A DNA stretch of 64,000 bases from sequence record OQ411014.1; one strand, 5' to 3'. Numbering within the stretch: position 1 is the first letter of the stretch; each line of letters begins with the position of its first letter. Below the pieces are notes generated by a model. The model was not told the origin of the DNA and made no database searches. It saw nothing but the letters and a program-made list of their open reading frames with translations. The translations under genes and the position numbers were made by a program. Below are positions 1 to 64,000 of this stretch, one piece after another.

Positions 1-1
1 A

Positions 2-2350
2 ATGTTGGCTCATTGGTGTCTTTGGAACAAAAAACCTGTTTCCCGTGAAGCTGATAACTTTGGTAAAGTTGTTGTTACATATGACCTAGTAGGTCGTGTA
101 CACCTTGACTACTTAGCACTTTACAAGAAACACGCCGGACAAGTTGAACAGTCCTATCGTCTAGATGATATTGCTGAGAAAGTAACTGGCGAAAACAAAG
201 TTGCATACGATGGTTCTTTGAACAAACTATACAACGAAGATTACAAAATGTTCTTACGATATTCTAAGCAGGATAGTATCCTACTGAAGAAAATTGATGA
301 GAAGATGGACTTCATCAGTCTACATAACCGACTAGCTCATAAAGAATGTGTACTAATCAGTACTACAATGGGTTCGGTAGCACTAATCGACACATCTATC
401 ATCAACAAAGCACACAAACGTGGTGAAGTAGTTTTTGATAAGAAGAATCAGGACGAAGTTGAAGTTGATGATCGTTATGATTTTATGGGTGACGATAATG
501 ATGATGGTGAAGAAGAGAAAGTAGCAGCAAAAGCAGCGGGTGCATGGGTACAAGATCCAGTACTGGGTTTAGTTGACTTCTTAGGATGTACTGACTTTAA
601 CAGTCTATATCCAACAGTTCTTCGTTCACTAGGTATGAGTACTGAATGTATTATCGGGCAATTGCGTCATGATTATACTGAAGCACACCTTGAGAAACGT
701 GTTGCAGACCAACGTGCTAAATCTAAATCCAAAGCATTTGAACCGGATTGGACAGCAGCATGGCATGGTTTGTTTGCTAGTATTGAGTTCACAATGGTTC
801 GTGAGAAATCACAAAGCCTAATCAATGTTGATTTGGAAGATGGTAGTACTTTCCAAGCAACTGGTGAACAACTATATGAACTAATCTTTGCTGAAGATAG
901 TACTATTGTTCTTTCCGCTAACGGAACACTATTTGATAAAACCAAAAATGGTGTAATCCCAGAGATCCTTACTGAATGGTACTCTGAGCGTAAATGTCAG
1001 CAGAAGATGGTCATCGATTATAAACACATGTACAGTGACGGTTGGGAATTGCCTTCATCTTCTCTTGACAAGATTGAAGCTGCTATGCAAAACTACACAG
1101 CAGGTACAGAATTTTACCGTACTAACTTACATGATGATGACCCAGTATATCTCCTACGTATTGCACTAACTAATGCAAACTATGAAGATGTAGCTAAACT
1201 TGTGGTTGAGAACGGTCTAGTACTGAAAGATGGTCGTCTATTCTGTAAGAAAGAAGATAAAGACTACTTCAAGAAACAAAGTGCGTTCTGGAAACAGAAC
1301 CAGCAGATTCGTAAGATTCTTCTGAACTCCCTCTATGGTGCACTACTAAACAAAGGTTCTCGTTTCTTTGATAAGCGTCTAGGTCAGTCTGTAACCCTAA
1401 CAGGTCGTAGTATGACTAAACACATGGCATCTCGTATCAATGAGATTGTTACTGGTGAATACAACCACGAAGGTGGATGTGTAATCTATGGTGATACCGA
1501 CTCCGTATATTTCAGTGTTGCTCACTATATGAAAGAACAAGGTTTTGAATTCAACCTAAACCGTACTGAAGTAGTTGATTTGTATGTCAAGATTGGTGAT
1601 GAAATGGGTGAAAACTTCTATGAATTCATGAATGATAGCTTCAACACTGGTATTGAGAAAGGTAAATTGGTTGGTGCAGATCTTGAGATGGTTGGTTCAC
1701 GCGGACTATTCCTGAAGAAGAAGCGTTATGCTATTCTGAAGTACTGGGAAGATGGTTTCCGTAAAGATGAAAATGGTGAAGTTGGTGAAATCAAAGCGAT
1801 GGGATTGGAAATCAAACGTTCCGATACACCTAAGTACATCCAGAACTTCCTACAAAGTACTTTGATTGCACTACTTGTTGGTGAATCCGAAGATGAACTT
1901 CGTGCTCGTGTTCGTGAATTCAAATGTACATTCAAGGATAAACCATCACATGAGAAAGGTGCTCCACGTACAGTGAAGAAGTACACTCATCACGAGGAAG
2001 AGTATCAGAAAACTGGTAAATGTTCCGTATCACACGTTCTAGCTGCAATTCAGTGGAACAAACTATGTGGAATTTACGAAGATAAAACTGTACCAGAAGC
2101 AACTGACGGTACTAAAGTAATCGTCTGTGATCTAAAGCCAAACCCTACAGGTATTCTGAAAATTGGTTATCCAATTGACTGTGTTGAATATCTACCTGAA
2201 TGGTTCCTTGACTTACCATTTGATGATGATAAAATGGAACAATCAATTCTAACCAAGAAACTAAACAACATCTTTGGTATTCTTGATATGGATATTGGTA
2301 TCAATGAGAAGAGTACACTAGCACTTGACAGTGGTTTCTTCGAGTGGTAA
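2..2350 (+). CDS. Family B DNA polymerase (T4 gp43-like), 5'-truncated by window edge
   Basis: PolB motifs DFNSLYP, KILLNSLYG, YGDTDS, KKRY in the ORF translation. Confidence 0.97.
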   Translation: MLAHWCLWNKKPVSREADNFGKVVVTYDLVGRVHLDYLALYKKHAGQVEQSYRLDDIAEKVTGENKVAYDGSLNKLYNEDYKMFLRYSKQDSILLKKIDEKMDFISLHNRLAHKECVLISTTMGSVALIDTSIINKAHKRGEVVFDKKNQDEVEVDDRYDFMGDDNDDGEEEKVAAKAAGAWVQDPVLGLVDFLGCTDFNSLYPTVLRSLGMSTECIIGQLRHDYTEAHLEKRVADQRAKSKSKAFEPDWTAAWHGLFASIEFTMVREKSQSLINVDLEDGSTFQATGEQLYELIFAEDSTIVLSANGTLFDKTKNGVIPEILTEWYSERKCQQKMVIDYKHMYSDGWELPSSSLDKIEAAMQNYTAGTEFYRTNLHDDDPVYLLRIALTNANYEDVAKLVVENGLVLKDGRLFCKKEDKDYFKKQSAFWKQNQQIRKILLNSLYGALLNKGSRFFDKRLGQSVTLTGRSMTKHMASRINEIVTGEYNHEGGCVIYGDTDSVYFSVAHYMKEQGFEFNLNRTEVVDLYVKIGDEMGENFYEFMNDSFNTGIEKGKLVGADLEMVGSRGLFLKKKRYAILKYWEDGFRKDENGEVGEIKAMGLEIKRSDTPKYIQNFLQSTLIALLVGESEDELRARVREFKCTFKDKPSHEKGAPRTVKKYTHHEEEYQKTGKCSVSHVLAAIQWNKLCGIYEDKTVPEATDGTKVIVCDLKPNPTGILKIGYPIDCVEYLPEWFLDLPFDDDKMEQSILTKKLNNIFGILDMDIGINEKSTLALDSGFFEW

Positions 2351-2395
2351 TATAAATGAATGAACCCCAGAAATGGGGTTCGATAAGGATAAAAT

Positions 2396-2812
2396 ATGAA
2401 AAATATTTATGAACGTATTGGTGAAGCAATTCTACAAGGTACTAACAGCCTGTTCTTGGTATGTGACAGTACTGAAGTAGCGTTAGTCAAACGCAAATAC
2501 AATTCCATTGGTACAACCAATCTAAACGGTATTGTATACACCGTATTTGACTTACAGGACGAAGTATCTAATACAGACTCTGACGATTTATCAGAAATGT
2601 ACCGTATTCTTCCTGTATCGCCTTCTACGCAGCCAAACATTACACCTAGTCACAATCATTGGTATAGTCCAAATAACCCGTGGAACGACCCGTGGAATGA
2701 TTGGAATCGAATGAACCCTCTCACTACACCAGTAACACATCCATTCTGGGACAAATTTGGTACATGGTCTAGTACTACTGACTATGATGTGACTTACAAA
2801 GTAAAGAAATAA
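2396..2812 (+). CDS. Hypothetical protein with N/P/W-rich C-terminal half
   Basis: 138-aa ORF, AAGGA RBS upstream; no recognised domain. Confidence 0.7.
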   Translation: MKNIYERIGEAILQGTNSLFLVCDSTEVALVKRKYNSIGTTNLNGIVYTVFDLQDEVSNTDSDDLSEMYRILPVSPSTQPNITPSHNHWYSPNNPWNDPWNDWNRMNPLTTPVTHPFWDKFGTWSSTTDYDVTYKVKK

Positions 2813-2824
2813 AAGTTCAAAAAA

Positions 2825-2854
2825 ATGAGACGTATCTATTTTCTGTGATATAAT
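2825..2854 (+). promoter_or_regulatory. Phage-specific (middle-type) promoter ATGAGACG-N11-TGTGATATAAT
   Basis: Fixed-spacing motif repeated upstream of many replication genes; here upstream of the sliding clamp. Confidence 0.75.
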
Positions 2855-2906
2855 AGATACGTAAATTGATGATGTTACCATAAACAAATATTTTGGAGAT
2901 ATAATA

Positions 2907-3638: not shown

Positions 3639-3645
3639 TATTTGA

Positions 3646-3673
3646 TGGGAGATGAATAATCTCCCAATTTTTT
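3646..3673 (+). terminator. Intrinsic terminator
   Basis: TGGGAGAT-N5-ATCTCCCA followed by T run. Confidence 0.75.
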
Positions 3674-3688
3674 ATTCAGGAGAATACA

Positions 3689-8496: not shown

Positions 8497-11803
<3,307 letters not shown>

Positions 11804-11817: not shown

Positions 11818-13145
<1,328 letters not shown>

Positions 13146-13146
<1 letters not shown>

Positions 13147-13175
13147 GGAGATAAATTCACTTTTTGTGATATAAT
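13146..13175 (+). promoter_or_regulatory. Middle-type promoter TGGAGATA-N11-TGTGATATAAT (SSB P1)
   Basis: Spaced motif. Confidence 0.7.
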
Positions 13176-13241
13176 AGATTTACCAGCTAGTCTGGTGAAG
13201 TAAAAGACTTGAGATTGTCTCTAAAAAATCTTAAAAAATTA

Positions 13242-13271
13242 TTGAGCATTTCGAAAAGAATGTGATATAAT
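13242..13271 (+). promoter_or_regulatory. Middle-type promoter TTGAGCAT-N11-TGTGATATAAT (SSB P2)
   Basis: Spaced motif. Confidence 0.7.
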
Positions 13272-13364
13272 ATAAACATCAAGATGATACGGAAATAAAA
13301 CAACATCTTGATGGTAACAAAGAAACCTAATATAAACCAAGAAACAACGTAAAGGAATACAAAT

Positions 13365-14426
13365 ATGAAATCTCTAGCTGAAATTCGTGCTCAACTACAA
13401 GCTCAAGAAGAAAAAGCCACCGCAATCAAAAACGGTACTTTTACTGGTGAACGTAAAGCTGACGCTTTCCTAGCTTTCTGGAACATCCCAGAGAACACTC
13501 CACTAAATCTACGTTTTCTACCAGATGCGGATGAGAACAACCCATTCTTCTGGCGTGAACGTGACATGATTACACTTGAGTTCAACGGTATCGTTGGTAT
13601 GCACTCTGATAAAGTACGTGTTCAAGTACCATGTAATGAAATGTGGGTTCCAAAATCCTGTCCTGTAACTAACGAACTACGTAAGTGGTACGAAGTTGCT
13701 AAAGAGACTGGTGATGAAGCTCTAAAACAACAAGCAAGCAAATACTGGAAAAAGAAATCCTATCTACTACAATGCTTTATCGCTCCTGATTCTGTAGCTG
13801 TAAAGGATGATATCGCTCCAGAAAACCCAATCCGTCGCGTTCTAGTGAATAAAGAGATTTTCAGTAAAATCACTTCTATTCTAATGAACCCAGGCATCAA
13901 AGAAATGCCAGTTCACTATGAAGGTGGTCGTGACTTTGGTGTAGTAAAAACTAAAAACGGTGGTGGCTTCAACCAGTACAATATGTCCCAGTTCTCCATG
14001 TCTGAGCGTCCATTGAATACTGCTGAACGTGCTGCAATCGAAACATACGGTCTATTCGACCTAGGCGAATTCATGCCAAAACAACCAACTCCTGAAGAAC
14101 TACAAGCAATTGCTGAAATGTTCGAAGCATCAGTTGATGGCAAACCATATGACCCTGCACGTTGGGCTTTCGCTTACCGTCCAGCAGGTGTTCAAAAACC
14201 AACTAGCGGTGCACCTTTTACTCCAGCACCACAACAAGCTCCTACTACTCCTGCTCCACAAGCACCAGTACAGGAAAGTGTTCAACAACCTGCTCCACAG
14301 GCTCCAGTACAACAACCTGTACAACAGCCAGTACAAACTCCAGTAACTCCTGTTACTCCAGCGGCATCTACCGCTCCAGTATCAGCAGCAGATTTGGTTG
14401 CTCGTCTAAAGATGCAAAACAAATAA
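13365..14426 (+). CDS. Single-stranded DNA-binding protein (gp32-like)
   Basis: LRFLPD..PFFW, CPV..YWKKKSY, F.KI, G.DF..K, Y..S.F; directly upstream of uvsX. Confidence 0.88.
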   Translation: MKSLAEIRAQLQAQEEKATAIKNGTFTGERKADAFLAFWNIPENTPLNLRFLPDADENNPFFWRERDMITLEFNGIVGMHSDKVRVQVPCNEMWVPKSCPVTNELRKWYEVAKETGDEALKQQASKYWKKKSYLLQCFIAPDSVAVKDDIAPENPIRRVLVNKEIFSKITSILMNPGIKEMPVHYEGGRDFGVVKTKNGGGFNQYNMSQFSMSERPLNTAERAAIETYGLFDLGEFMPKQPTPEELQAIAEMFEASVDGKPYDPARWAFAYRPAGVQKPTSGAPFTPAPQQAPTTPAPQAPVQESVQQPAPQAPVQQPVQQPVQTPVTPVTPAASTAPVSAADLVARLKMQNK

Positions 14427-14468
14427 TCTGAAGTTGAAGTAAGTAGTAAAGGTAGTATAATAGATAAA

Positions 14469-14493
14469 GGGGCAAAGGATTTGCCCCAATTTT
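14469..14493 (+). terminator. Probable terminator hairpin
   Basis: GGGGCAAA-N3-TTTGCCCC then short T run. Confidence 0.6.
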
Positions 14494-14511
14494 ATTCATG
14501 GAGAAGAATAT

Positions 14512-15630
14512 ATGAAAATGACATCTGGTTTCGCTAACATCCTAAAAAGCAGTACTGCATCTGTAAAGAAAAACTCTGGCGTTAGTATGGGCTTCCATGA
14601 TCCTGACACTTGGGTTAGTACTGGTAACTTAGCATTGAACTACCGTATCAGTGGAGACTTTCGTAAAGGTATCCCACTAGGCAAAGTAACTATGTTTGCT
14701 GGTGAATCTGGTTCTGGTAAATCATTTATCGTTAGTGGAAACATTGCTCGTGAAGCACAACAACAAGGTATCTTCGTAGTACTAATTGACTCCGAAAACG
14801 CATTGGATAGTGATTGGCTTCGTGCTCTAGGTGTTGATACTTCTGAAGAAAAACTTCTAAAAATGAACATGGGTATGATTGGCGACGTTGCTAAATTCAC
14901 TTATGACTTCATTGAAGGTTATCGTAAAGAGTATGAAAACGTTCCACGTGAAGAACGTCAAAAAGTACTGTTCATCATTGACTCTATCGGTATGTTGAAT
15001 ACTGAAATTGCTAATGACCAAATGAAAGCTGGTACTATGAAAGGTGACATGGGTCACAAACCAAAACAACTAAAAGCGTACATCACTAACTGTGTGAACT
15101 CTTTAGGTGCATTGAATATGGGTATGGTCTGTGTAAACCACAGTTACGAATCCCAAGACATGTTCAACCCTGACCCAAAAATCAGTGGTGGTTCTGGTCT
15201 AGTATATGCATCCTCAATCGTAGTTGCGATGGGTAAACTAAAATTGAAAGAAGACCAAGATGGTAACAAAACATCTGATGTGAGCGGTATCCGTTCAAAA
15301 TGTAAAGTCATGAAGACTCGTTACAACAAACCATTTGAAGACGTAGAAATCAAAATCCCTTACGAGCGTGGCATGGACCCACTAAGTGGACTATTTGATA
15401 TGTTCCTCAAATACGAACTACTAACCAAATCCGGTAACCGTTATATGTATGTTGATATCGATACTGGTGAACAAATCCTCATGTTTGAAAAAGCATGGCG
15501 TCAAAATACAAACAAATCGCTTGAACTAGTAATGGAACAGTTCAATCGCCATCCTAATATCTCTCCTATCCTAGAAGATGATAAAGGTGATGAATCCTTT
15601 GGTGATGATATCCCAGACACTGAAGAGTAA
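14512..15630 (+). CDS. uvsX: RecA-like recombinase UvsX
   Basis: Walker A GESGSGKS, IDSENALD, IDSIG, SGGSGLVYASS, KTRYNKPF. Confidence 0.95.
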   Translation: MKMTSGFANILKSSTASVKKNSGVSMGFHDPDTWVSTGNLALNYRISGDFRKGIPLGKVTMFAGESGSGKSFIVSGNIAREAQQQGIFVVLIDSENALDSDWLRALGVDTSEEKLLKMNMGMIGDVAKFTYDFIEGYRKEYENVPREERQKVLFIIDSIGMLNTEIANDQMKAGTMKGDMGHKPKQLKAYITNCVNSLGALNMGMVCVNHSYESQDMFNPDPKISGGSGLVYASSIVVAMGKLKLKEDQDGNKTSDVSGIRSKCKVMKTRYNKPFEDVEIKIPYERGMDPLSGLFDMFLKYELLTKSGNRYMYVDIDTGEQILMFEKAWRQNTNKSLELVMEQFNRHPNISPILEDDKGDESFGDDIPDTEE

Positions 15631-35051: not shown

Positions 35052-36188
35052 ATGTCTGTATTTGCAAAAAATGAAAAATCCCATTTGGAAAAGAAAATGT
35101 TTTTTGACGAAGCAGTTGATATTCAACGTTTTGAACACGTAAAATATTCTGCTATTGATCGTCTATCTGAAACACAATTGGGGTTCTTCTGGCTTCCACA
35201 GGAAGTTGACGTAACTCGTGACAAGATTGACTTTGAAATGCTATCTCCAGTAGAGAAACACATCTTCACTTCTAACTTGAAACGTCAAATTCTACTTGAC
35301 TCTGTTCAAGGTCGTGGTCCAAGCCTAACACTACTTCCTTATACTTCTCTTCCAGAGATTGAAGGTTTCATTAGTATTTGGGATTTCGTGGAAGGTGCTA
35401 TTCATAGTCGTTCCTATACGCACATTATCCGTAACGTATATCCGAACCCATCTGAAGTATTTGACACTATGTTGGATATTCCAGAGATTACTTCATGTGC
35501 AGCGGACGTATCAAAGTACTATGACCGTCTTGATGAGTTGGGTTTACAGTACCGTATGCTTGGTGAAGGTACACATGTTGTAAATGGCGAAACTGTAGTA
35601 GTTGACATGCGTGAACTGAAGAAAGCACTATGGTTATGTTTGAACAGTATCAACGTACTGGAAGGTATTCGTTTTTATGTTTCCTTTGCTTGTTCGTGGG
35701 CTTTTGCACAGAATAAGAAAATGGAAGGTAACGCTAAAATCATCAAACTAATTTGTCGTGATGAGAACCTTCACCTTGCAGCAACACAAATGTGGTTACG
35801 TCTACTCAAGAAAGATGATCCAGATTTCGTGAGTATCGCTGAAGAATGTCAAGAAGAAGTTCAACAAATGTTCCTTGATGCAATTCGTCAAGAAGAAGAG
35901 TGGGCTGACTTCCTATTCAAAGACGGTTCTATGATTGGTGTGAACGCACAAATTCTGAAAGAATACATTCGTTTCATCGGCTCCAAACGTATGCAAGCGG
36001 TTGGTGTGAAATGTCCTTTCCGCGTAAGTAAAACTAACCCACTACCGTGGACTGAGTTCTGGATTAGCGGTTCTGAAATCCAGGTAGCTCCACAAGAAAC
36101 TGAACTAAGTTCATATATCACAGGTGGTATCGTGAACGATCTAGATGATGACTTCTTTGCTGAATTCAAATCTGTAACTACATTATAA
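35052..36188 (+). CDS. nrdB: Class Ia ribonucleotide reductase beta subunit
   Basis: FFWLPQEV, LLDSVQGRG, E.IHSRSYT, LEGIRFYVSF, RDENLH, APQETE. Confidence 0.97.
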   Translation: MSVFAKNEKSHLEKKMFFDEAVDIQRFEHVKYSAIDRLSETQLGFFWLPQEVDVTRDKIDFEMLSPVEKHIFTSNLKRQILLDSVQGRGPSLTLLPYTSLPEIEGFISIWDFVEGAIHSRSYTHIIRNVYPNPSEVFDTMLDIPEITSCAADVSKYYDRLDELGLQYRMLGEGTHVVNGETVVVDMRELKKALWLCLNSINVLEGIRFYVSFACSWAFAQNKKMEGNAKIIKLICRDENLHLAATQMWLRLLKKDDPDFVSIAEECQEEVQQMFLDAIRQEEEWADFLFKDGSMIGVNAQILKEYIRFIGSKRMQAVGVKCPFRVSKTNPLPWTEFWISGSEIQVAPQETELSSYITGGIVNDLDDDFFAEFKSVTTL

Positions 36189-36194
36189 AAGTAA

Positions 36195-36225
36195 ATGGAG
36201 AGCATAATATGTTCTCCATCTTTTT
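36195..36225 (+). terminator. Intrinsic terminator
   Basis: ATGGAGAGC-N7-GTTCTCCAT then T run. Confidence 0.7.
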
Positions 36226-36236
36226 GAGGGTATATA

Positions 36237-36407
36237 ATGAATAGTTCTGTGTTTAGCTTTCTACCAGATACTGTCTATCGATTTCATTTGGTTGACGGAA
36301 ACCAAATAACTGGTATCATCACTCAAGTGTTTGATGATGGAATCGAGGTTTCTAATCGACGAATCGTTCAAGACAAAATTGTTTTTTGGTACGAAGTTGA
36401 AGAATAA
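36237..36407 (+). CDS. Small 56-aa ORF missing from the track, possible Sm-like/SH3-like beta fold
   Basis: Hand-translated MNSSVFSFLPDTVYRFHLVDGNQITGIITQVFDDGIEVSNRRIVQDKIVFWYEVEE; GAGG RBS; fills the gap exactly. Confidence 0.65.
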   Translation: MNSSVFSFLPDTVYRFHLVDGNQITGIITQVFDDGIEVSNRRIVQDKIVFWYEVEE

Positions 36408-36700
<293 letters not shown>

Positions 36701-36717
36701 GAACAGGAGCAATACTA

Positions 36718-37443
36718 ATGGCTAAAACTACTCTAGACCTGAATGCACAACTTCAGCAAGTAATCGAATTCATGACTGTTGTTGGTCAAACTGTGAATAC
36801 TCATGAAACTTACGCAACACCAAAAGTTGCAGACTTCCGTACTCGTCTCATCGAAGAAGAAGTTTTCGGTAAGAAAGAATTAGTTGATTCGATGAATAAT
36901 GATGATGTTGTGGGTGTTCTTGATGGTCTATGTGACGTTCTATATGTAACCTATGGTGCTCTAGCAACCTATGGTCTAGAACTAGACACTTCAGTATCTC
37001 ATCCGGTAGAAATCGCGGATGGTGGTTCTAAGCAGATTTTCAAACACACTGCATTTGAACTAATTCGCTCTATCTCTGGTGCAGTAGAGCAATACAAACG
37101 CGGCGTTGAACTAGGTGACTTCCGCACAATGATTCGTGGTCTTGGTAATGTCATTTTTCAAGTAACTCGCATTGCTGAAGAATACAATATCTCTCTTCAA
37201 GCACCATTCGCTGAAGTTCATGCGTCCAACATGAGTAAGCTATGTACAACCGAGCAGCAAGCAATTGATAGTATTGCTGAACGTGTAGAAGCTAATAACG
37301 ACAAGAGTGCTGATTATATTGGTGCTACTATTGCTCGCGTTGAAGTGAATGGTAAAGAGTACTTTGTTATTCGCCGTGCCTCCGACAATAAAGTACTGAA
37401 AGGTAATGGCTTCTTTGAACCTAACCTAGCTAAGTACGTGTAA
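36718..37443 (+). CDS. All-alpha NTP pyrophosphohydrolase (MazG/PRA-PH/dUTPase-like)
   Basis: LIEEE, LDGLCDVLYVTYG, FAEVHASNMSK, KVLKG. Confidence 0.88.
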   Translation: MAKTTLDLNAQLQQVIEFMTVVGQTVNTHETYATPKVADFRTRLIEEEVFGKKELVDSMNNDDVVGVLDGLCDVLYVTYGALATYGLELDTSVSHPVEIADGGSKQIFKHTAFELIRSISGAVEQYKRGVELGDFRTMIRGLGNVIFQVTRIAEEYNISLQAPFAEVHASNMSKLCTTEQQAIDSIAERVEANNDKSADYIGATIARVEVNGKEYFVIRRASDNKVLKGNGFFEPNLAKYV

Positions 37444-40346: not shown

Positions 40347-41693
40347 ATGAGTAATATTACGCTTACGGAAAAGCAACAAAGTACTTTTGATGATTTTATC
40401 GAACGTGTGCATAACTACCCAGGACGCTCTATCTGTGTTCTTGTCGGATATGCTGGTACAGGTAAAACAACATTAGTATCTGAGATAGTACGGAACTTAC
40501 ATTCCGAGTACAACATTGCAGTAACATCACCAACGCATAAGGCGAACTCTGTTATTCGCAATATGCTAATCAATAACGTAGGTCTAAAGAAAGATGATGC
40601 ACAGGTTAGTACTATTCACTCTTTCTTAGGATTGAAGTTAGTATATGAAAAGAACCATCAAGTACTGAAGCATGACCCACAATCTAAGAATAGTAACTCC
40701 TATGTTGATATTCTGATTGTTGATGAATGTTCCATGATTTCCGAAGAGATGTACAATCACATCATGAACCAGATTCACCGTGTTCGACGTGCAATTCTTT
40801 TCATCGGTGACTCATGTCAGCTACCACCAGTTGAAGCTGAAGGTACTATTGGTGAAACCAAACTAAGTCCAACGTTTGATGTACCAGTGAAGTACGAACT
40901 ACAAGAAGTTCTGCGTCAAGCAATGGATAACCCAATCATCAAAGTTGCAACTGCAATTCGTGAATGTATTGGTACTAAGAACAACCCGATGGATATCCTC
41001 AATGCGATTGATGGTTATGATACAATCACACCAATCACTGACGAGGCTTTATTTTTGGACGTGTATAAAGCATATATTTGTGAGAACATTGGTTCAGCGA
41101 AGAAGATTTTTGATTTCGTACAAGAAAACAAAATCATTGCTTATACAAACTACAGAGTGAACTATGCAAACATGTTCATTCGGAGTGAAGTATTCCCTGA
41201 ACACAAAGAAACCGAGTTCGTCAAGGGTGAACCAATTGTCTTTGAATCCGTAACAGAAAACTGTTCATACACTGTACAGCAAATGATTCAATGTCCTGAA
41301 GTTCGTGAAGAACAATTCTTGGGTATTGATTGTTGGCAGTTCAAACTTCCAAACGGAAACTATATCTTAGGTGTAGGGCCATATAGTCGTTTAGCTCTAG
41401 AAGACCATCTTGATAAGTTAGTGAAGAAGATTGAAAAGAAAGAGATGAACCCACTAACACAGAAGCCATATGGTTGGCAAGATTATTACATTATCAAGAA
41501 CAAGATAAACATAATCAACTACCCGTATGCAACAACGGCACATAAGTCTCAAGGTAGCACGTTCAACAATATCTGGTTCGATACTGATTTTATTGATCGT
41601 ATTGCCAATAACGATACTAAATGTCGTATCATGTACACAGCGATGACTCGCCCACGTTATAGTGTTCTACTACGTAAGAACGCGAGTTGGTAA
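40347..41693 (+). CDS. dda: Dda/RecD-like SF1B helicase
   Basis: GYAGTGKT, SPTHKA, TIHSFLGL, IVDECSM, GDSCQLPPV, TAHKSQGSTF, YTAMTR. Confidence 0.93.
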   Translation: MSNITLTEKQQSTFDDFIERVHNYPGRSICVLVGYAGTGKTTLVSEIVRNLHSEYNIAVTSPTHKANSVIRNMLINNVGLKKDDAQVSTIHSFLGLKLVYEKNHQVLKHDPQSKNSNSYVDILIVDECSMISEEMYNHIMNQIHRVRRAILFIGDSCQLPPVEAEGTIGETKLSPTFDVPVKYELQEVLRQAMDNPIIKVATAIRECIGTKNNPMDILNAIDGYDTITPITDEALFLDVYKAYICENIGSAKKIFDFVQENKIIAYTNYRVNYANMFIRSEVFPEHKETEFVKGEPIVFESVTENCSYTVQQMIQCPEVREEQFLGIDCWQFKLPNGNYILGVGPYSRLALEDHLDKLVKKIEKKEMNPLTQKPYGWQDYYIIKNKINIINYPYATTAHKSQGSTFNNIWFDTDFIDRIANNDTKCRIMYTAMTRPRYSVLLRKNASW

Positions 41694-41770
41694 ATAAGTA
41701 CTGTGGCGTAATGTCACAGTACTGTTATCGTACAATAAATAATAAAAAGATATTGTTTCGGAGATATAAA

Positions 41771-45333: not shown

Positions 45334-47304
45334 ATGGCAAAGAAACAATCATCTGTCATGGAAGAACATGGAATCCAACAACTAACCGAATATGAACACG
45401 CCCGAATCAGGACAGAAATGTATCTTGGTTCACGTTCTGTGCATGAACAGATGGCTCTTATCTTTGGTGAAACAGGCTATGCAGTACTGAACACTGCTTG
45501 GGTTCCAGCACTACTAACATCTATTCGTGAAGTTCTTGATAACTCCCTTGACGAATTCGTGAAAGCAATGGTGAAAGACCCTGAACTACGCGTGACGTAT
45601 GATGAAGGAACTCTAAGCATCGTGGTTTCCGACAACGGTCGCGGTATTCCAATTGACTACGTACCAGATACGCAAAAGAACTTGTGTACTATGGTAATGA
45701 CTGAAATGAAAACTGGTCGTAACTTCAATGATGACGAACGTGAAAACGTCATTGGTATGAACGGTCTTGGTGGTTCAGTTGTAATGATTGTTAGTGAAAC
45801 TGCTGAACTGGAAATCCATCGTGCTGGTCGTCCATACAAAACCACAAGCAGTAATGATGGTTATGATGGAATGTACAAATTTACACAGAAATTCAGCGAA
45901 GGAACTCACATGTTCCCTGACCTACAAATCAATGAACCAACGATTCGTAAAGTCAAAGCTGATAAGACTGGTACTACAATTCGTTTCAAACTAAGCCCAG
46001 CAGTATTCCCGAACCTAGTACTACCAACTGAACTAATCTATAGTATCCTAAAAGAGATTAGTGCTGCGAACCCTACCTACAAAATCTTCCTGAACGACAA
46101 ACGTATTCAGTCTAAAGGTGGAGTAGAGAAAGGTCTATTTGGTAAAGCTAAACTAATGACCCTAAGTGTGAAAGACCCAGGCTTTGACAGTACTTTTTAC
46201 ATCGTTCCTGATTCAGTAGAAGGACAAAGTACTAATTTCCACATGCATGGTCTAGTAAACAACGCCCCAGCGTTAGAAGGTGGCACTCACCTAGAAACAT
46301 TCAAGAAGTTCTTTGCATTAGGTATTGGGACTTCTCTTGAGAAAGAAGCTAAGCGTCGTAAAGTAAAACTAAAACCCAACCGTTCTGATATTGAAGAAGG
46401 TCTATTGATTTACAATATCACACGTATGAACTCTCCATCGTTCAACTCACAGACTAAGACTAAACTAACGAATGAAAATGTTATTCGTCCTGTACAGCAA
46501 GCTATGAGTACTGAATGGTTTGATGAGTTAGTGAAGAAAAATAAGGAGTGGGTGGATTCAATCTTTACTCGTTGTGCTGAACGTACGAACAAGAAAGATG
46601 CAGATGAAGATCGTCGTCTAGCAAAGAAACTACTAAAAGGTAAAGTAGCTAAACTCCGTGATGCAACTGGTACTGACCGTTCCAAATGTATCCTACTAAT
46701 CGCAGAAGGTGATTCCGCAATTAGTAACATGTCCGGTGCTCGTGATTCTGCGATTCATGGTATTCTTCCGTTGCGTGGTAAAATCATGAACGTGAACGGT
46801 ACTGAGAAAACTAAAGATCTAATGGATAGTGATTCTCTACGTGACATTATGGCATCAATCAACCTAATCCCAGGACAAAAAGCTGTACGTTCAGAACTGA
46901 ACTATGGTAAGCTATATATCTGTGCGGATGAGGATGAGGATGGTAAGAACATTGGTGCACTAGTGTGTAACTTCCTATTCAAATTCTGGCCTGAACTATT
47001 CCAAGACCCAGAAAATCCGTTTGTTTACATCTTCAAAACTCCATTTATTATTTTGGAGAAAGGTAAAGAAAGTCGTTATTTCTATGGTCATAACGTGCAT
47101 GAATTCAACCCTGACGAATGGAAAGGATGGAAAGCAACTCGTGCAAAAGGACTAGGAACACTAGAGAAATCCAACTTCCGTGATGCACTAACCGATGGCG
47201 TAGCAATCGCAATCACTGATGACGGTAACTTAGGTGCAACATTAGACCTCATCTTCAATAAAGGTCGTTCCGATGACCGTAAAGAATGGATGAAGGACGA
47301 GTAA
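45334..47304 (+). CDS. Type IIA topoisomerase ATPase/TOPRIM subunit (gp39+gp60 fused, GyrB/ParE-like)
   Basis: EVLDNSLDE, DNGRGIP, GMNGLGG, EGDSA, PLRGKIMN, DEDEDG, KGLG. Confidence 0.96.
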   Translation: MAKKQSSVMEEHGIQQLTEYEHARIRTEMYLGSRSVHEQMALIFGETGYAVLNTAWVPALLTSIREVLDNSLDEFVKAMVKDPELRVTYDEGTLSIVVSDNGRGIPIDYVPDTQKNLCTMVMTEMKTGRNFNDDERENVIGMNGLGGSVVMIVSETAELEIHRAGRPYKTTSSNDGYDGMYKFTQKFSEGTHMFPDLQINEPTIRKVKADKTGTTIRFKLSPAVFPNLVLPTELIYSILKEISAANPTYKIFLNDKRIQSKGGVEKGLFGKAKLMTLSVKDPGFDSTFYIVPDSVEGQSTNFHMHGLVNNAPALEGGTHLETFKKFFALGIGTSLEKEAKRRKVKLKPNRSDIEEGLLIYNITRMNSPSFNSQTKTKLTNENVIRPVQQAMSTEWFDELVKKNKEWVDSIFTRCAERTNKKDADEDRRLAKKLLKGKVAKLRDATGTDRSKCILLIAEGDSAISNMSGARDSAIHGILPLRGKIMNVNGTEKTKDLMDSDSLRDIMASINLIPGQKAVRSELNYGKLYICADEDEDGKNIGALVCNFLFKFWPELFQDPENPFVYIFKTPFIILEKGKESRYFYGHNVHEFNPDEWKGWKATRAKGLGTLEKSNFRDALTDGVAIAITDDGNLGATLDLIFNKGRSDDRKEWMKDE

Positions 47305-47377
47305 TTCAGTACTGAACTGTGAGGGGTAAATATCCCTCACAACAGATAGGATATCAAGAAACAAAGAGGCAAAGGAT

Positions 47378-48781
47378 ATGGCTAAAAAGCAAAACGAGAG
47401 TATTTCTAACGCAACCCTAACACTACTGGACTATGTGAGTTCAGAGTACATCAACCAATCATCACTGGAATATGCAATCAGTACTCTAGACCGTGCAATT
47501 CCAGGTATTGATGGACTAAAAGCATCACAACGTAAAGCAATCTTCACTATCAGTAAAGTTAGTGGTGAAATCAAAACTGTATCAGCAGCAGGACGTATGA
47601 TCAGTGATGGCATTTATCTACACGGTGACGCATCTGCATCTGGTACTTTACAGAACCTAGCATCACCAGTAGTGAATAACTACCCACTAATTGGCAAACG
47701 TGGTGGTTTCGGGAACCAAGCGAACCCTGAGCCAGCAAGTGCACGTTATACATATGTAAAGAAAACCAAAGTCACTGAAGCTCTAGTACTGCGTGATATG
47801 GATGTAGTTCCAATGCAAGAGAACTACGATGGTACAACTATGGAACCACGTCACTTCTTACCTATTATTCCTTTGTGTCTATTCGGTAACGATAGTATGT
47901 CTGTAGGTTACAAAAGTATTATTATGCCGTACAAATTAGAAGATATTATTGACAACTGTATTCGAGTAATTGACAATAAGAAGTTAGTTGATATGATGCC
48001 GTACTATGTAAGTGTAGGTGCATCACCGAACGTAACTAAACTTGAAGAACTAAAGTACGAGTTCTATGGTAAAGCTGAAGTTATCGATGCAAGTACTGTA
48101 CGTATCACTGGTTTACCTCCTTATCGTAAGCTAGAAACTTTCGTTGAGAAACTAATCTCTATGTCCGATGATGGTTCTATTCGTGATTATGACGATAACA
48201 GTACTGACTTAGTGAACATTACAGTGAAGCTCCCACGTGGTACTTCTGCAAAATGGACTGAAAAAGATGTAATTGAATATTTTGGCCTATCCAAGAAAGT
48301 AACTGAAAAACTAAACGTTCTAGGTGAAAATGGATTGGTCAAATCGTACACCAATACTTTGGACATTATTCGTGACTTCGTTGATTTCCGTTTCAAGTAC
48401 TATGTAAAACGTTATGAGAAGAAACTGGAAGCAGCAGCCGCAGAAGTTCGATACAAAGCTCTAGTACAGGAATGTTTCCATAATGATATGATTGGTAAAA
48501 TCAAAGGCTTCCAGAACCGTGCTGAACTAGTTGCATTCGTTGAATCACTAAACACTGAAATTGAAGCATCTGATGAAAACATTCAGAGCATTGTGAACTA
48601 TCCATCTTACCGTTGGACTCAAGAGAACTATCAGAAAGTTCTTGAAGAAATCCAACACGCTTTAGGTCTAATGGATGAGTACAATGATTTACTTTCCAAT
48701 CACGATAAGATTTGGGCGATTTACAAAAATGAACTACTAGAACTACGGGCTATGGACTGCACTCCTAAGTCAGAGGACTAA
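47378..48781 (+). CDS. Type IIA topoisomerase breakage-reunion subunit (gp52, GyrA/ParC-like)
   Basis: IDGLKASQRK, YLHGD, ASARYT active-site Tyr, EP..LPIIP. Confidence 0.95.
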   Translation: MAKKQNESISNATLTLLDYVSSEYINQSSLEYAISTLDRAIPGIDGLKASQRKAIFTISKVSGEIKTVSAAGRMISDGIYLHGDASASGTLQNLASPVVNNYPLIGKRGGFGNQANPEPASARYTYVKKTKVTEALVLRDMDVVPMQENYDGTTMEPRHFLPIIPLCLFGNDSMSVGYKSIIMPYKLEDIIDNCIRVIDNKKLVDMMPYYVSVGASPNVTKLEELKYEFYGKAEVIDASTVRITGLPPYRKLETFVEKLISMSDDGSIRDYDDNSTDLVNITVKLPRGTSAKWTEKDVIEYFGLSKKVTEKLNVLGENGLVKSYTNTLDIIRDFVDFRFKYYVKRYEKKLEAAAAEVRYKALVQECFHNDMIGKIKGFQNRAELVAFVESLNTEIEASDENIQSIVNYPSYRWTQENYQKVLEEIQHALGLMDEYNDLLSNHDKIWAIYKNELLELRAMDCTPKSED

Positions 48782-54080: not shown

Positions 54081-54706
54081 TGAAGAAACGTGTATGTATT
54101 TTTGATGTTGATGAAGTACTGTTAGACTGGATGGAAGGTTTACGTTCATTTGTTGAAAAACATTATGATATCCATCCAGTAGGACTACCATCTGATTTCT
54201 CGTTAGTAGAGTGGTTGGGTGTTGAGTCCAGTGATGTTCGTGATATCATCAAACATTTCAATGAACGTGCATATGAATTCGGCCTTCTTGGTCGAGTTGA
54301 AGATGATGCTTACGAGTACTTACGAGTACTACGTAAGAACTTCCCAGATGTTGGATTTATCGCTCTAACCAAGAGCGGTACTGGTGGTCATGGTAAAGTA
54401 CTGCGTCAAGTGAACTTAGAGAACCAGTACCCTGGCATCTTCGATGAAGTTCATATTGTTGAGATGTATGAATCTAAACGTACTGCTCTGCATAAGCTAC
54501 AGGTGCAGTATGATGTGCAACTCTTTGTTGATGATTACTTAGCTAACATCACGACTGCCAAGGACTTAGGTATTCGTTCTATCATGTTCGCTTCTAGCCA
54601 TAACTATCAATACAAAGATAGTACTGATTTCGAGTACATCCCGAACTGGTATCAATTACAACGCACAATTTCGTATTCCCTTTTACAAGGTAGTCACAAA
54701 AAATAA
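54080..54706 (+). CDS. HAD-family 5'(3')-deoxyribonucleotidase-like phosphatase
   Basis: FDVDEVLLD motif I, LT, K, FVDDY. Confidence 0.85.
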   Translation: MKKRVCIFDVDEVLLDWMEGLRSFVEKHYDIHPVGLPSDFSLVEWLGVESSDVRDIIKHFNERAYEFGLLGRVEDDAYEYLRVLRKNFPDVGFIALTKSGTGGHGKVLRQVNLENQYPGIFDEVHIVEMYESKRTALHKLQVQYDVQLFVDDYLANITTAKDLGIRSIMFASSHNYQYKDSTDFEYIPNWYQLQRTISYSLLQGSHKK

Positions 54707-59950: not shown

Positions 59951-59957
59951 GACATAC

Positions 59958-60685: not shown

Positions 60686-60701
60686 TATATGTACGTATAA
60701 T
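60674..60701 (+). promoter_or_regulatory. Sigma70 promoter TTGACA-N16-TATAAT
   Basis: Consensus hexamers, 16-bp spacer. Confidence 0.8.
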
Positions 60702-60740
60702 GGGTATCAACAGTGATGCCCTTTTTAACAGGAGAACAAG

Positions 60741-61838
60741 ATGCTCAATTTTGCTATATTAGCCATACCAAGTATCATCGTCCTGATTGTGATGAAGTAC
60801 AAATACGATCATCACATCAGTACTAAAGAAGTACTAATCCACGCTGGTGCAATTATTGTAATGTCACTAGTTGTACTTGGACTAACGTATGCAGTACTGT
60901 ACGCTAAGTTGGGTGATGTTGAAATACTCAACGGTGAAGTAACGAATAAGTACAAACACACCGAATGGTGTACACAAAGTTCATCATGTAAGTACTATAC
61001 ATGGCATGAACGATGTTCTTACAGTACTGATTCTAAAGGTAAACGAACTAAGTCATGTGTATCGTATAAAGTATTTGATTATACATATGAAGTTGATTGG
61101 TATGTTGAAAGTACTGTAGGTTCTAATGTGATTGAGCGAGTGAACCGACAAGGTACACAAATGCCATCACGATGGGCGGCAGTGAAGATGGGCGACCCAG
61201 CAGCAGCAGAACATTATTACACGAATTATCTATTCGCTGATGAACATTCATTGTTTGCTGAAAGAAAGTTCGAAGAGTCATATGATGTGGAATATCAGAA
61301 AGAAATTCCTGATTATCCTTCGGTGTATGATTACTACAATGTAAGTCATATCGTAAACAGTACTAAACATAGTGTTGCAGGATATGAACAATATATTGCC
61401 AATGAGTTAAAAACTCTAGGCAAAGAAAAACAACTAAATTTAGTAATAGTGCTTTACAACCACAACGATCCATTATATACTGATGCTCTACTTAGCAAAT
61501 GGCGTGGTGGGAAAAAGAATGATGTAATCATGATGTTCGGTTTAGACGCAGATGGAACAGTTCGTTCATTCAGAAGTACTTCGTTTGCACAAGGTATGAA
61601 GAATGAGATGTTGCACAGTACTTTACGTATTGACGCACTATCTGAAAAGATGAACATCCATTTGCTTGAGAAACAAGTAAAGACAGTTGCAGAAAAATTC
61701 AATAGACTTCCTAACGAGGACTTCAAATACATGAAGTACAAGATGGAACCTAAGAAAGAGTTCATCGTACTGGGTTCAATCGTACTGTTAGTTATGTCTA
61801 TTTTTATTGGCTTATATATGAGAGATAATGAATTATGA
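60741..61838 (+). CDS. Membrane protein (2 N-terminal TM, large extracytoplasmic domain with Cys pairs, C-terminal TM)
   Basis: Hydrophobic ends; W.GGKKNDV motif; AGGAG RBS. Confidence 0.8.
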   Translation: MLNFAILAIPSIIVLIVMKYKYDHHISTKEVLIHAGAIIVMSLVVLGLTYAVLYAKLGDVEILNGEVTNKYKHTEWCTQSSSCKYYTWHERCSYSTDSKGKRTKSCVSYKVFDYTYEVDWYVESTVGSNVIERVNRQGTQMPSRWAAVKMGDPAAAEHYYTNYLFADEHSLFAERKFEESYDVEYQKEIPDYPSVYDYYNVSHIVNSTKHSVAGYEQYIANELKTLGKEKQLNLVIVLYNHNDPLYTDALLSKWRGGKKNDVIMMFGLDADGTVRSFRSTSFAQGMKNEMLHSTLRIDALSEKMNIHLLEKQVKTVAEKFNRLPNEDFKYMKYKMEPKKEFIVLGSIVLLVMSIFIGLYMRDNEL

Positions 61839-62392: not shown

Positions 62393-62399
62393 TAATACA

Positions 62400-62429
62400 G
62401 CGAAAGGTCATATGGCCTTTCGCTTTTTT
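62400..62429 (+). terminator. Intrinsic terminator
   Basis: GCGAAAGGTC-N4-GGCCTTTCGC then T run. Confidence 0.8.
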
Positions 62430-62442
62430 GCGAGGAATACAT

Positions 62443-63042
62443 ATGCGTGAAGTACTGTTTACATTAGCTGATGGGTTAGCAACTTCCCATAAAGCAATCA
62501 AAGAAACTAATCTATATAAAGAACTCAAACGATACAAATCTAACAATTTTAGTTATGTAGTAACGCCTGAAAATATTGAAATTTCTGCTCATGCTACATA
62601 CACAGAACCGCCACCACCCAAGACTGGTCCAGCTTTGTCAACCAATAGTATTAGCGTTCCTAATGGTGCTATGACAGGCTACTACTTTTCAGGACCACAT
62701 AATTATTTTATAAAGCTAAAACTCATTCTCAATGCATGGAATGAAGTTCTGAATATTCGCATAGTTCGCAATGTGAATAACCCCAACACTATCAACACTG
62801 TAGGTTCGCACTCATTTACCATTACCAATGACGGTCAAAGTAACTACAGTCTAGAAGATGGTGGAGATCTTTTACATAACGTGCTATTTGTTGATAAAGA
62901 CTATATCCTTTATGATGGGAAGGTGTATAATATCAATAGTTCTCCTACTGCATTCAATGAATCAATGTTCGGTGACACAATTACAGTACTGGATTTTGTG
63001 GAGATCAAAGAACGCTTTGAAGCTATCGTACGTGAAGGATAA
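62443..63042 (+). CDS. Hypothetical protein
   Basis: GAGG RBS before ATG 62443. Confidence 0.7.
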   Translation: MREVLFTLADGLATSHKAIKETNLYKELKRYKSNNFSYVVTPENIEISAHATYTEPPPPKTGPALSTNSISVPNGAMTGYYFSGPHNYFIKLKLILNAWNEVLNIRIVRNVNNPNTINTVGSHSFTITNDGQSNYSLEDGGDLLHNVLFVDKDYILYDGKVYNINSSPTAFNESMFGDTITVLDFVEIKERFEAIVREG

Positions 63043-63046
63043 AAAA

Positions 63047-63520
63047 ATGTCAGAATTGTATGAAGAGTTTATTGAAGATGATGAAGCTGGTTACAACGAA
63101 ACACTAATTCATGGTGTTCGTGCATTGGTCAGTACTGGCATTCTAAAGAACATTAAGAGTGTTCAGGATGCAGTTCAATCTGGTTGTGCTTTCGAAATGG
63201 ATATCCTAGACAAAACTAATGTCTGGAATTCATTGAAGTGCAAAACCAATTACAACTCAATCTGTGTTGATTTTCTTTTACAGCCAGGAACACCCGAAAC
63301 CCGAAAAATGCATGTTGTATTCAGGGATGGTAAATGTATATTCTTTAGCGTTAGTATTCATGATATTGTCATGGACGTTGTTTTGTGTGATGATTCATTT
63401 ATGTTCAGCTATGGTGATAACATTACATATTCACATTTTGAAGAACATGAGTTCCAGTACTCTACATGTTCTGAAGCAGTCGCTTCTTTATTAGCACTAT
63501 CTAAAACTCGTAAGGAGTAA
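63047..63520 (+). CDS. Hypothetical acidic protein
   Basis: AAGGA RBS before ATG 63047. Confidence 0.7.
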   Translation: MSELYEEFIEDDEAGYNETLIHGVRALVSTGILKNIKSVQDAVQSGCAFEMDILDKTNVWNSLKCKTNYNSICVDFLLQPGTPETRKMHVVFRDGKCIFFSVSIHDIVMDVVLCDDSFMFSYGDNITYSHFEEHEFQYSTCSEAVASLLALSKTRKE

Positions 63521-63523
63521 AAC

Positions 63524-63880
63524 ATGACTTGGATTTATCTTATTCTTTTATTCTCTGTAGTACTGTACCTTTTCTTTCTGAAAGGTGTTTCTGTAGTACT
63601 ACGCAAGATTGACAGTACTGAATGTGACGGTTCGATTGTGGATGTAATCATGGATTACCCACGTACAGTACTTGTGGGTTTATTTGTATTCTTGCTTATG
63701 TCCTTGTTTACTGTGCGTTATCAGATTGGTCAGATGTATGACTGTTCTGTTCGTAGTTCAGTACAGCAGGTACAAACGCAATATTCATGGTACTTTGATG
63801 TATGTCAGTTCAAGAACAAGTCCGGTGTTTGGATTGATTTCAAACAAGTTCGTGCTACACCGGATGGTGAGGAAGAGTAA
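63524..63880 (+). CDS. Small membrane protein (2 TM)
   Basis: AAGGAG RBS; two hydrophobic segments. Confidence 0.75.
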   Translation: MTWIYLILLFSVVLYLFFLKGVSVVLRKIDSTECDGSIVDVIMDYPRTVLVGLFVFLLMSLFTVRYQIGQMYDCSVRSSVQQVQTQYSWYFDVCQFKNKSGVWIDFKQVRATPDGEEE

Positions 63881-63886
63881 TATATA

Positions 63887-64000
63887 ATGTTCGAATTTGA
63901 AGAAGAGATTTATTTTGATCCTTCTGAAGATGGCTATACACACCTAAATGCGTATAGTAAAGGACGTACACGTTTGGGGAGGATGCTATCTAATTTTGCA
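63887..64000 (+). CDS. Partial ORF, possibly NADAR-like family (3'-truncated)
   Basis: Hand-translated MFEFEEEIYFDPSEDGYTHLNAYSKGRTRLGRMLSNFA. Confidence 0.55.
   Translation, partial: MFEFEEEIYFDPSEDGYTHLNAYSKGRTRLGRMLSNFA

Follow-up and report, generated by a model that had tools for sequence, protein, structure and literature searches.

The window considered here is a stretch of 64,000 nucleotides, bases 186,001-250,000 of Escherichia phage EJP2 (OQ411014.1, 349,185 bp, genus Asteriusvirus), a Rak2-like "group 2.2" jumbo myovirus. It carries a replication, recombination and nucleotide-metabolism module together with the large terminase gene, and the palindrome AGTACT, which is the recognition site of ScaI, is scattered through it in numbers far above those predicted from base composition (A.334, T.283, G.203, C.180). 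A first-pass annotation of the window had arrived by hand at about 195 sites where about 20 would be expected, a roughly tenfold excess; the exact count is 196 against a zero-order expectation of 20.9 (9.4x), and the claim holds. The complete EJP2 genome was reassembled from eight annotated pieces to allow genome-wide testing of the word, and it contains 1312 sites against 116 expected (11.3x), that is, about one site per 270 bp. No description of such an excess was found in the literature on EJP2, CBB, RaK2 and fEgEco12 or in the comparative literature on jumbo phages, so that an excess which is very large is apparently unreported before. The sites and their full octamer form are distributed in the window as follows.

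1 to 64000: 196 dispersed AGTACT sites, the first at 359 and the last at 63667, mean spacing 325 bp
558 (first) to 63613 (last): 52 copies of the full octamer CAGTACTG

The word and its extended form in coding and intergenic DNA

AGTACT is flanked by C at -1 and by G at +1, each at about 52% of the sites; the preferred form is yAGTACTr and the best form is CAGTACTG. The 52 octamers of the window compare with 0.8 expected and the 425 of the genome with 4.1 expected, and the octamer is the commonest 8-mer of EJP2. Outside the -1 and +1 positions, a faint symmetric T/A bias extends out to +/-4. The enrichment is nested, rising from 2.8x for GTAC through about 5x for AGTAC and GTACT and 11x for AGTACT to 103x for CAGTACTG, and every other 6-bp palindrome stays within 1.7x in the window and 2x genome-wide. 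A general palindrome-making mutation such as quasi-palindrome template switching is ruled out, since no other tolerated palindrome exceeds 2x.

The first-pass annotation had raised the possibility that the excess would vanish after correction for the sub-words. A maximal-order Markov model does expect 165.6 sites in the window (196 observed) and 1105 in the genome (1312 observed), which leaves an excess of 1.2x, but the sub-words are mostly the full word itself: it contains 1312 of the 1966 AGTAC and 1312 of the 1889 GTACT in the genome. Because the 5-mers are mostly made of the full word, the maximal-order model was rejected as a test; AGTAC and GTACT are consequences of the full word, not its causes.

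Two other null models were used for the coding sequences. In the synonymous permutation, codons are permuted within each gene with the protein and the codon usage kept, and in the second null the codon order is shuffled. The coding sequences of the genome hold 1158 sites against 313 +/- 15 under synonymous permutation (3.7x, z = 57) and 167 +/- 12 under the codon-order shuffle (6.9x, z = 85); the annotated coding sequences of the window hold 194 against 53.1 +/- 6.3 and 28.2 +/- 4.8, respectively. As had been noticed by eye, the sites fall in all three codon phases, 108 as AGT-ACT, 63 as xxA-GTA-CTx and 23 as xAG-TAC-Txx in the window and 565, 411 and 182 in the genome, and also in intergenic DNA, with four fully intergenic sites in the window and 152 intergenic sites in the genome, at a genome-wide density of 5.7/kb compared with 3.6/kb in coding sequences. 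Since the excess outlasts nulls that preserve protein and codons, no single amino-acid pair explains it, in agreement with the same early observation.

Synonymous choice, which the first-pass annotation had proposed to check, does create the site, and it does so in the Ser-Thr, Val-Leu and Lys/Gln/Glu-Tyr contexts. The spelling AGT-ACT is used in 64% of Ser-Thr pairs (13-16% expected), although AGT makes up 27% of the Ser codons that do not stand before Thr; the xxA-GTA-CTx spelling is used in 411 of 701 x-Val-Leu contexts (73.6 expected), and [KQE]-Tyr followed by a T-initial codon is spelled as AGTACT in 178 of 376 cases (40.7 expected). The proteome itself is shifted in the same direction. 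Ser-Thr (1.63x, rank third), Gln-Tyr (1.58x, fourth) and Val-Leu (1.44x, seventh) are among the most over-represented dipeptides, while the reversed dipeptides Thr-Ser and Leu-Val are at expectation; the two at the top of the ranking, Tyr-Cys and Cys-Thr (1.7x each), could be coded so as to contain parts of the extended word. In addition, EJP2 carries six tRNAs outside the window, at genome positions 264,487-268,540: Ser(ACU), Ser(GCU), Ser(UGA), Thr(UGU), Arg(UCU) and Met. The tRNA-Ser(ACU) has an unusual anticodon with A at position 34, the exact complement of AGU, and together with tRNA-Ser(GCU) it decodes the otherwise rare AGU codon that AGTACT imposes, which suggests that the phage Ser tRNAs are an adaptation to the burden of the word.

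A coding artefact, that is, a codon or dicodon preference or a signal at the level of mRNA, has in its favour that AGT, ACT, GTA and TAC are frequent codons in EJP2 and that matching tRNAs are present. The excess nevertheless goes beyond a null that keeps the protein and codon usage of each gene, three frames are used, and intergenic density is the higher one. Moreover, when read in the coding sense, the two frames used most both have symmetric flanks (C at -1 and G at +1 in 56% and 51% of AGT-ACT sites and in 50% and 64% of xxA-GTA-CTx sites), and in the third frame, xAG-TAC-Txx, C is the commonest base at -1 (44%). This explanation is scarcely credible, and the codon bias is more likely a consequence of AGTACT than its cause. 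The excess is a DNA-level feature and not a by-product of amino-acid pairs or codon usage, and the word is maintained at the expense of codon choice and even of protein sequence.

The conversion of Ser-Thr pairs into AGT-ACT amounts to 58-68% in every region of the genome, early-type and structural regions included, and the density of sites is 3.65/kb on + genes and 3.26/kb on - genes. A pressure specific to a gene class (early versus structural genes, or gene strand) is ruled out by this uniform conversion of compatible dipeptides.

Retention among relatives and contrast with other genomes

EJP2 was aligned with Erwinia phage Hallingskeid over 44 kb at 76% nucleotide identity. Sixty-two percent of the EJP2 sites are intact in Hallingskeid, compared with 24% of all hexamers and 7-33% of eight control words that differ from AGTACT by one mismatch or use the same codons. 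The difference is found at silent positions: identity at codon position 3 is 0.833 inside sites and 0.554 outside, and positions 1 and 2 differ little from background (87.5% inside versus 83.6% outside and 90.4% versus 89.7%, respectively). The pattern of retention is weaker but the same in comparisons with Turkey5, 121Q and Salmonella phage SD-2_S15. In a four-genome alignment of 26.7 kb, 14 sites are common to all four genomes and 22, 22, 16 and 8 are private to one of them, whereas control words of the same composition have 0-2 common sites; the sites are therefore both retained and newly created. The early inference of positive selection on the DNA stands, as the excess exceeds the coding nulls and the silent positions inside sites are conserved.

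The abundance of AGTACT in the relatives of EJP2, in other phages and in the host was found to be as follows.

Hallingskeid, orthologous region of 46.5 kb: 9.3x
Turkey5, orthologous region of 45.7 kb: 6.5x
121Q, orthologous region of 35.7 kb: 4.4x
SD-2_S15, orthologous region of 42.6 kb: 4.4x
Klebsiella phage RaK2, 30 kb: 7.4x
Cronobacter phage GAP32, 30 kb: 6.4x
Serratia phage BF, 16 kb: 6.9x
Pseudomonas phage PA5oct (related), 16 kb: 0 observed, 5.4 expected
Vibrio phage KVP40 (T4-like), 16 kb: 4 observed, 4.9 expected
Coliphage T5 (similar guanine + cytosine content), 30 kb: 1 observed, 9.8 expected
E. coli K-12, 50 kb: 3 observed, 11.6 expected

The trait is thus common to all five enterobacterial Rak2-like lineages sampled (4-9x), and among the genomes sampled it is confined to this enterobacterial clade. 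The same excess in the host or in unrelated phages of similar composition would have spoken against a special role of the word, as the first-pass annotation pointed out; E. coli and T5 are in fact depleted. The density is 3.76/kb in EJP2 and 0.06/kb in E. coli, a contrast of about 60-fold in which the E. coli figure comes from three sites in the 50-kb sample.

Phages normally avoid restriction sites, and EJP2 does so to a high degree. GCGC does not occur at all in the 349-kb genome, where 441 copies are expected; it is missing from all AGTACT-rich relatives as well, but PA5oct, KVP40 and T5 do not lack it. AAGCTT is likewise absent against 116 expected and is one of about 25 6-bp palindromes other than AGTACT that are present in 0-1 copies: GGATCC, CTCGAG, GTCGAC, CAGCTG, GAGCTC, GGTACC and GCATGC as well as CGATCG, AGCGCT, TCCGGA, TGGCCA and TGCGCA have none, and CTGCAG and CCATGG have a single copy each. 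GAATTC and GATATC are not avoided. In a genome so heavily shaped by restriction avoidance, AGTACT is the single exception.

Modification, early promoters and possible readers of the word

A phage DNA-modifying enzyme that reads AGTACT was the first option of the first-pass annotation, and it finds no support, because in Hallingskeid, the closest relative, modification was found only at GATC and CCWGG in spite of the 9.3x enrichment. This comes from a comparison of native with amplified DNA by Nanopore sequencing, which gave GATC, CCWGG and additionally TGCAT in Kaldavass; no nicks were reported for either phage, and for Hallingskeid the authors state that the motifs are not assignable one-to-one to enzymes and that host methylases are possibly responsible (PMC11780129). 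Dam/Dcm/CpG-type methylation has been reported for RaK2 (PMC3622015), and fEgEco12 DNA was cut as predicted by ten enzymes (PMC13070987); no published report was found on ScaI digestion of the DNA of these phages. The only methylase genes in EJP2 encode a Dam-family N6A enzyme and a C5 enzyme of 285 amino acids, the latter with orthologues in Hallingskeid (84.6% identical) and in Kaldavass and 121Q (about 75%). Both genes are orthologous to those of relatives in which only GATC, CCWGG and, in Kaldavass, TGCAT are modified, and neither would be cognate to AGTACT by this measure. The statement that no candidate enzyme is obvious in the window also proved correct, as the Pfam hits across it include no DNA-binding or modification domain.

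An enzyme that methylates or otherwise modifies AGTACT would both protect the sites and mark the phage DNA, and protection would explain why a ScaI site is the sole palindrome tolerated amid the purging of others. The clade also has conserved orphan methylases, and the Hallingskeid motifs are not tied to particular enzymes. On the other hand, the motifs determined in Hallingskeid and Kaldavass omit AGTACT although the sampled region of the former is about 9x enriched, the methylases of EJP2 are of the Dam and C5 types only, and CCWGG is not avoided (1.2x), as expected if it is the C5 target. In addition, the decay variants of the word are not dominated by the deamination products AGTATT and AATACT, and protection accounts for tolerance of the word, not for an 11-fold excess. 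A covalent mark at AGTACT is unlikely, and as the explanation of the whole phenomenon we regard it as very improbable.

The word has a defined position in one class of regulatory elements. Repeated sigma-70-type early promoters of the form AAAAAGTAC-TTGCAy-AGTACTGAaaAAGCG-TATAAT are located at the genome ends, where about 30 near-identical cassettes stand before very small genes at EJP2 0-9 kb and 338-349 kb; a conserved leader (…TATAATGTTTTAyATCGAGAGCGGGAA…) comes after each of them. In 23 of 31 early-type promoters an AGTACT ends on the first T of the -35 element, and in 17 a site lies in the spacer; the 16 promoters that combine the two carry them 11 bp apart, on one face of the helix. This arrangement recurs in PBECO4, which in addition has a second class of promoters in which AGTACTG abuts the -10 element. 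The cassette is present in 10-30 copies per genome in about 100 related records. An exact scan of IMG/VR with the double-site promoter AGTACTTGCAYAGTACTG gave no matches. A protein bound at the promoter sites would occlude RNA polymerase; in that they overlap early promoters and also lie within genes, the AGTACT sites resemble those of dispersed repressor-site systems.

Outside this group of phages, a single copy of the 72-nucleotide cassette, about 86% identical, is present in each of at least two unrelated records of about 150 kb, vB_EcoM_UP17 and a record labelled Campylobacter phage B15, and Justusliebigvirus and Phapecoctavirus names are also among the organisms matched. This suggests transfer or convergence.

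The absence of modification in the closest relative, together with flanks that are two-fold symmetric in most frames, points to a symmetric reader of double-stranded DNA. AGTACT may be a selected "signature word" of the enterobacterial Rak2-like phages that is read non-covalently by a clade-specific symmetric factor, and we put this forward tentatively, at somewhat below an even chance. A binding protein as the reader is plausible and is favoured here on the basis of the symmetric flanks, the placement at promoters and the depletion of the host. The factor would be a dimer, and with so dense an array of sites the phage chromosome, although unmodified, would have an identity encoded in its sequence, to be told from a host genome about 60-fold poorer in the word. 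Such an identity could serve to coat or compact the DNA, to spare it from nucleases, or to target transcription or replication to it. As AGTACT lies on the -35 edge, in the spacer or on the -10 edge, the same reader would also be placed to shut the early promoters and might switch off early transcription. T4 uses covalent hypermodification to tell its DNA from host DNA; that a clade-specific protein replaces it in these phages, distinguishing phage from host DNA by AGTACT, sparing or compacting the former or redirecting transcription, and closing the early promoters as well, is a more specific proposal and a rather doubtful one.

Several points weigh against a selected word with a protein reader. 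The reader itself was not found: the recorded Pfam hits of the window genes contain no DNA-binding domain, and no repressor or helix-turn-helix protein was identified among them or in a search of EJP2 with SlmA. The absence of modification is taken from published data on relatives of EJP2 and would apply to EJP2 itself by analogy. A phage that purges other restriction sites runs a risk with 1312 unprotected ScaI-type sites, and a non-covalent reader leaves this paradox standing. Full octamers are kept no better than other sites (16/28 versus 58/93), and in contigs about 99% identical to EJP2 the substitutions in sites (8/1158) do not differ from those elsewhere (563/62433, p = 0.63), a comparison that is underpowered. 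Since the early promoters are paralogues, common descent may account for part of the sites that they share. Furthermore, sequence data of this kind do not distinguish selection from a drive by biased conversion with certainty.

In such a molecular drive, biased mismatch repair or gene conversion of a very-short-patch-like kind would turn near-matches into AGTACT, and the word would spread without being useful; a process of this kind has reportedly been proposed for the cyanobacterial HIP palindromes. It would mimic selection in conservation tests, and the many lineage-specific gains besides retention, the uniform conversion of dipeptides over all gene classes and the nearly Poisson scatter are what it predicts. 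It would also suit a word that is known from sequence alone, with no function or reader assigned to it. However, the substrates of conversion should be depleted, as is established for CTWGG in E. coli, and none of the 18 one-mismatch neighbours of AGTACT is (0.96-2.8x), for which reason selection is favoured over conversion. Nor was methylation detected at AGTACT in Hallingskeid, and no Vsr-type gene was noticed in the EJP2 annotation. Conserved and highly expressed genes resist the word, which implies a cost, and a cost sustained over five lineages favours a benefit; the drive is thus unlikely in our judgement. A signal comparable to Chi, read on single-stranded DNA by a translocating helicase-nuclease of phage or host that is attenuated or switched by it, is supported by the genes for T4-type recombination-dependent replication (UvsX, UvsY, UvsW, gp46/47, a Dda-like helicase and a RecB-family exonuclease) and by the independent enrichment of the true E. 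coli Chi, which implies that nuclease-directed words are under selection in EJP2. An over-represented word dispersed evenly and densely over the genome would suit the protection of ends, and a palindrome would work in both directions in a genome replicated by recombination from many ends. Yet AGTACT is palindromic with its preferred flanks and has neither asymmetry nor orientation bias, while all Chi sequences known to us are asymmetric and orientation-dependent. One site per 270 bp is about 17 times the density of Chi in E. coli, and the sites positioned at the -35, spacer and -10 of early promoters would be left unexplained; we consider a Chi-like role quite unlikely.

The remaining candidates are particular proteins that would themselves recognize the double-stranded palindrome. 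The only two-fold symmetric DNA-cleaving or DNA-binding enzyme recognisable in the window is encoded here:

45334 to 48781, + strand: type II topoisomerase genes, GyrB-like EJP02_319 and GyrA-like EJP02_320 (annotation; Pfam HATPase_c, DNA_gyraseB, Toprim and DNA_topoisoIV)

If AGTACT were the preferred site of this topoisomerase, with a 4-base staggered cut around GTAC, dense sites could speed the unlinking of a 350-kb chromosome. A strong 6-bp core with weaker +/-1 positions and a faint T/A bias to +/-4 resembles the preference for a G-segment, and enrichment that is nested from GTAC to CAGTACTG fits additive half-site energies. Against this, KVP40 has no enrichment although T4-type phages carry a related topoisomerase, and the known preferences of topoisomerase II are weak and degenerate. 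As reader of the word, EJP02_319/320 is a speculative candidate only, and the proposal is highly improbable. A host protein could alternatively be the reader, and the obvious one is SlmA, the nucleoid occlusion protein, which phage DNA would activate or titrate; its consensus GTGAGTACTCAC has the same core, and the trait is confined to phages of Enterobacterales. The SlmA site GTGAGTACTCAC needs G1, T2, A4 and G5 and a purine at position 3 (PMC3020112). EJP2 prefers the disallowed pyrimidine at position 3 (YAGTACTR 754 versus RAGTACTY 146), and its 349-kb genome has only one GTRAGYRCTYAC. SlmA is ruled out as reader on these flank requirements (GTR AGY RCT YAC), and a search for a SlmA/TetR homologue in EJP2 found none (best E = 0.4). 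We know of no other E. coli protein with an AGTACT site, and a host reader has very little probability left.

Among known systems, the nearest analogue of AGTACT is the cyanobacterial HIP1, GCGATCGC. Both are short perfect palindromes over-represented by one to two orders of magnitude, scattered over coding DNA in all frames and over non-coding DNA at about one per few hundred to thousand bases, and retained at orthologous positions above background; with an excess of at least 10-fold, sites in all frames and in non-coding DNA and retention above background, AGTACT has three properties of a HIP-type word, of which others have reportedly been described by Elhai. They differ in that HIP1 is methylated and holds targets of orphan methylases (CGATCG, GATC), whereas no modification was found at AGTACT in the closest relative, and in that HIP1, whose function is still unsettled, belongs to a cyanobacterial cellular lineage and AGTACT to a clade of lytic phages in which it also lies on core promoter elements. 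Chi (GCTGGTGG), DNA uptake sequences and KOPS are likewise short, dense, genome-wide words that are read by DNA-processing machines and mark self, but they are asymmetric, orientation-biased and 4-20 times sparser (one per 1-5 kb, compared with one palindrome per 0.27 kb). SlmA sites share the identical 6-bp core, a palindrome for a dimeric helix-turn-helix protein dispersed on the chromosome, but their required flanks are missing in EJP2 and there are about 50 of them in E. coli (PMC3020112) compared with 1312 sites here. As far as the proposed mechanism is concerned, phi29 p6, SPO1 TF1 and the stoperators of cluster A mycobacteriophages offer precedents for genome-wide binding in phages that also silences early promoters, with preferred sites that overlap them. 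However, what p6 and TF1 recognise is bendability or hydroxymethyluracil DNA, not a defined word, and stoperators, of which a genome has about 30, are asymmetric, follow the direction of transcription and function in lysogeny; none of these uses a defined palindrome as dense as AGTACT. A ScaI-type restriction-modification site has the same sequence, with no cognate methylase or modification evident here.

If a protein does read the word, AGTACT would represent a genetically encoded labelling of a whole viral chromosome without chemical modification, with a selective value sufficient to remodel codon usage, the set of tRNAs and dipeptides over 350 kb and in five lineages sampled. It would also allow the puzzle of highly iterated palindromes to be studied in a lytic coliphage, which is easier to handle than a cyanobacterium. 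If, on the contrary, a repair drive is true, these phages would add a new case of non-adaptive genome sculpting among viruses. The density of AGTACT and the absence of GCGC make a simple signature of this phage group in metagenomes, and ScaI- or RsaI-type restriction is predicted to be strongly active against these phages, which are therapeutic candidates.

Local arrangement of sites and other observations

The spacing of the sites is near Poisson, with a coefficient of variation of 0.98 in the window. The sole non-random pair distance genome-wide is a peak at 9-11 bp, with 26 pairs at 11 bp against 4.9 expected; helical phasing or arrays are ruled out, as the spacing is Poisson-like except for this peak. 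The following pairs and site-free stretches lie in the window.

41697 to 41723: intergenic site pair at a distance of 21 bp that makes up a perfect 9-bp inverted repeat, AGTACTGTG-N9-CACAGTACT
54315 to 54330: site pair 10 bp apart within a coding sequence, ACGAGTACTTACGAGTACT
60819 to 60835: site pair 11 bp apart within a coding sequence, the one-helical-turn spacing of the early promoters
12883 to 14550: site-free stretch of 1668 bp covering EJP02_275 (0 sites in 1062 bp)
35521 to 37357: longest site-free stretch of the window, 1837 bp, with the gene for the ribonucleotide reductase beta subunit (NrdB) and three small genes

The intergenic pair accounts for two of the four fully intergenic sites of the window and lies directly after the RecD/Dda-like helicase gene, which ends at 41693, the next gene starting from 41771. 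No T-run follows the inverted repeat, so that it is no obvious intrinsic terminator. EJP02_275 holds the position of the single-strand DNA-binding protein of relatives, by synteny with Hallingskeid and 121Q. Genes low in sites in EJP2 include this homologue of the single-strand DNA-binding protein gene (0) and the gene for the major capsid protein (1.6/kb), and a gap of 2.7 kb is present at the portal-scaffold region. The longest stretches without a site fall in genes that are conserved or highly expressed, and AGTACT therefore carries a cost; that such stretches are foreign islands is ruled out, because these genes are not recent acquisitions.

The large terminase gene EJP02_273 (9164-11800, + strand) encodes 878 amino acids, compared with about 546 in Hallingskeid, 121Q and SD-2_S15; the RaK2 terminase is likewise long (889 amino acids). 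The extra N-terminal part of about 330 amino acids has a LAGLIDADG_3 domain and matches DnaB and "exonuclease" regions of unrelated phages, and it is therefore taken to be an intein with a homing endonuclease. The density of AGTACT in it is normal.

Several public runs (SRR20950768, SRR10874834 and SRR36216633) hold contigs about 99% identical to the EJP2 window. EJP2-like phages appear to have been sampled repeatedly in public sequencing runs, and these contigs are population data that can be mined for selection on AGTACT sites.

Two other words are over-represented. CAGCAG has 51 copies in the window and its complement CTGCTG 33, both about 5x over composition; the skew may be ordinary repetition of Gln/Ala codons, or an orientation bias of the EcoP15I-type site. 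In EJP2 the Chi octamer of E. coli, GCTGGTGG, is enriched and biased to one strand: the + strand has 27 copies where about 1.7 are expected and the - strand has 10 where the expectation is about 1.4, and on the coding strand it occurs 23 times against 5.5 +/- 1.9 under the synonymous-permutation null. Chi-related hexamers are among the top words of relatives and of the window, where CTGGTG, TGGTGA and GGTGGT are examples.

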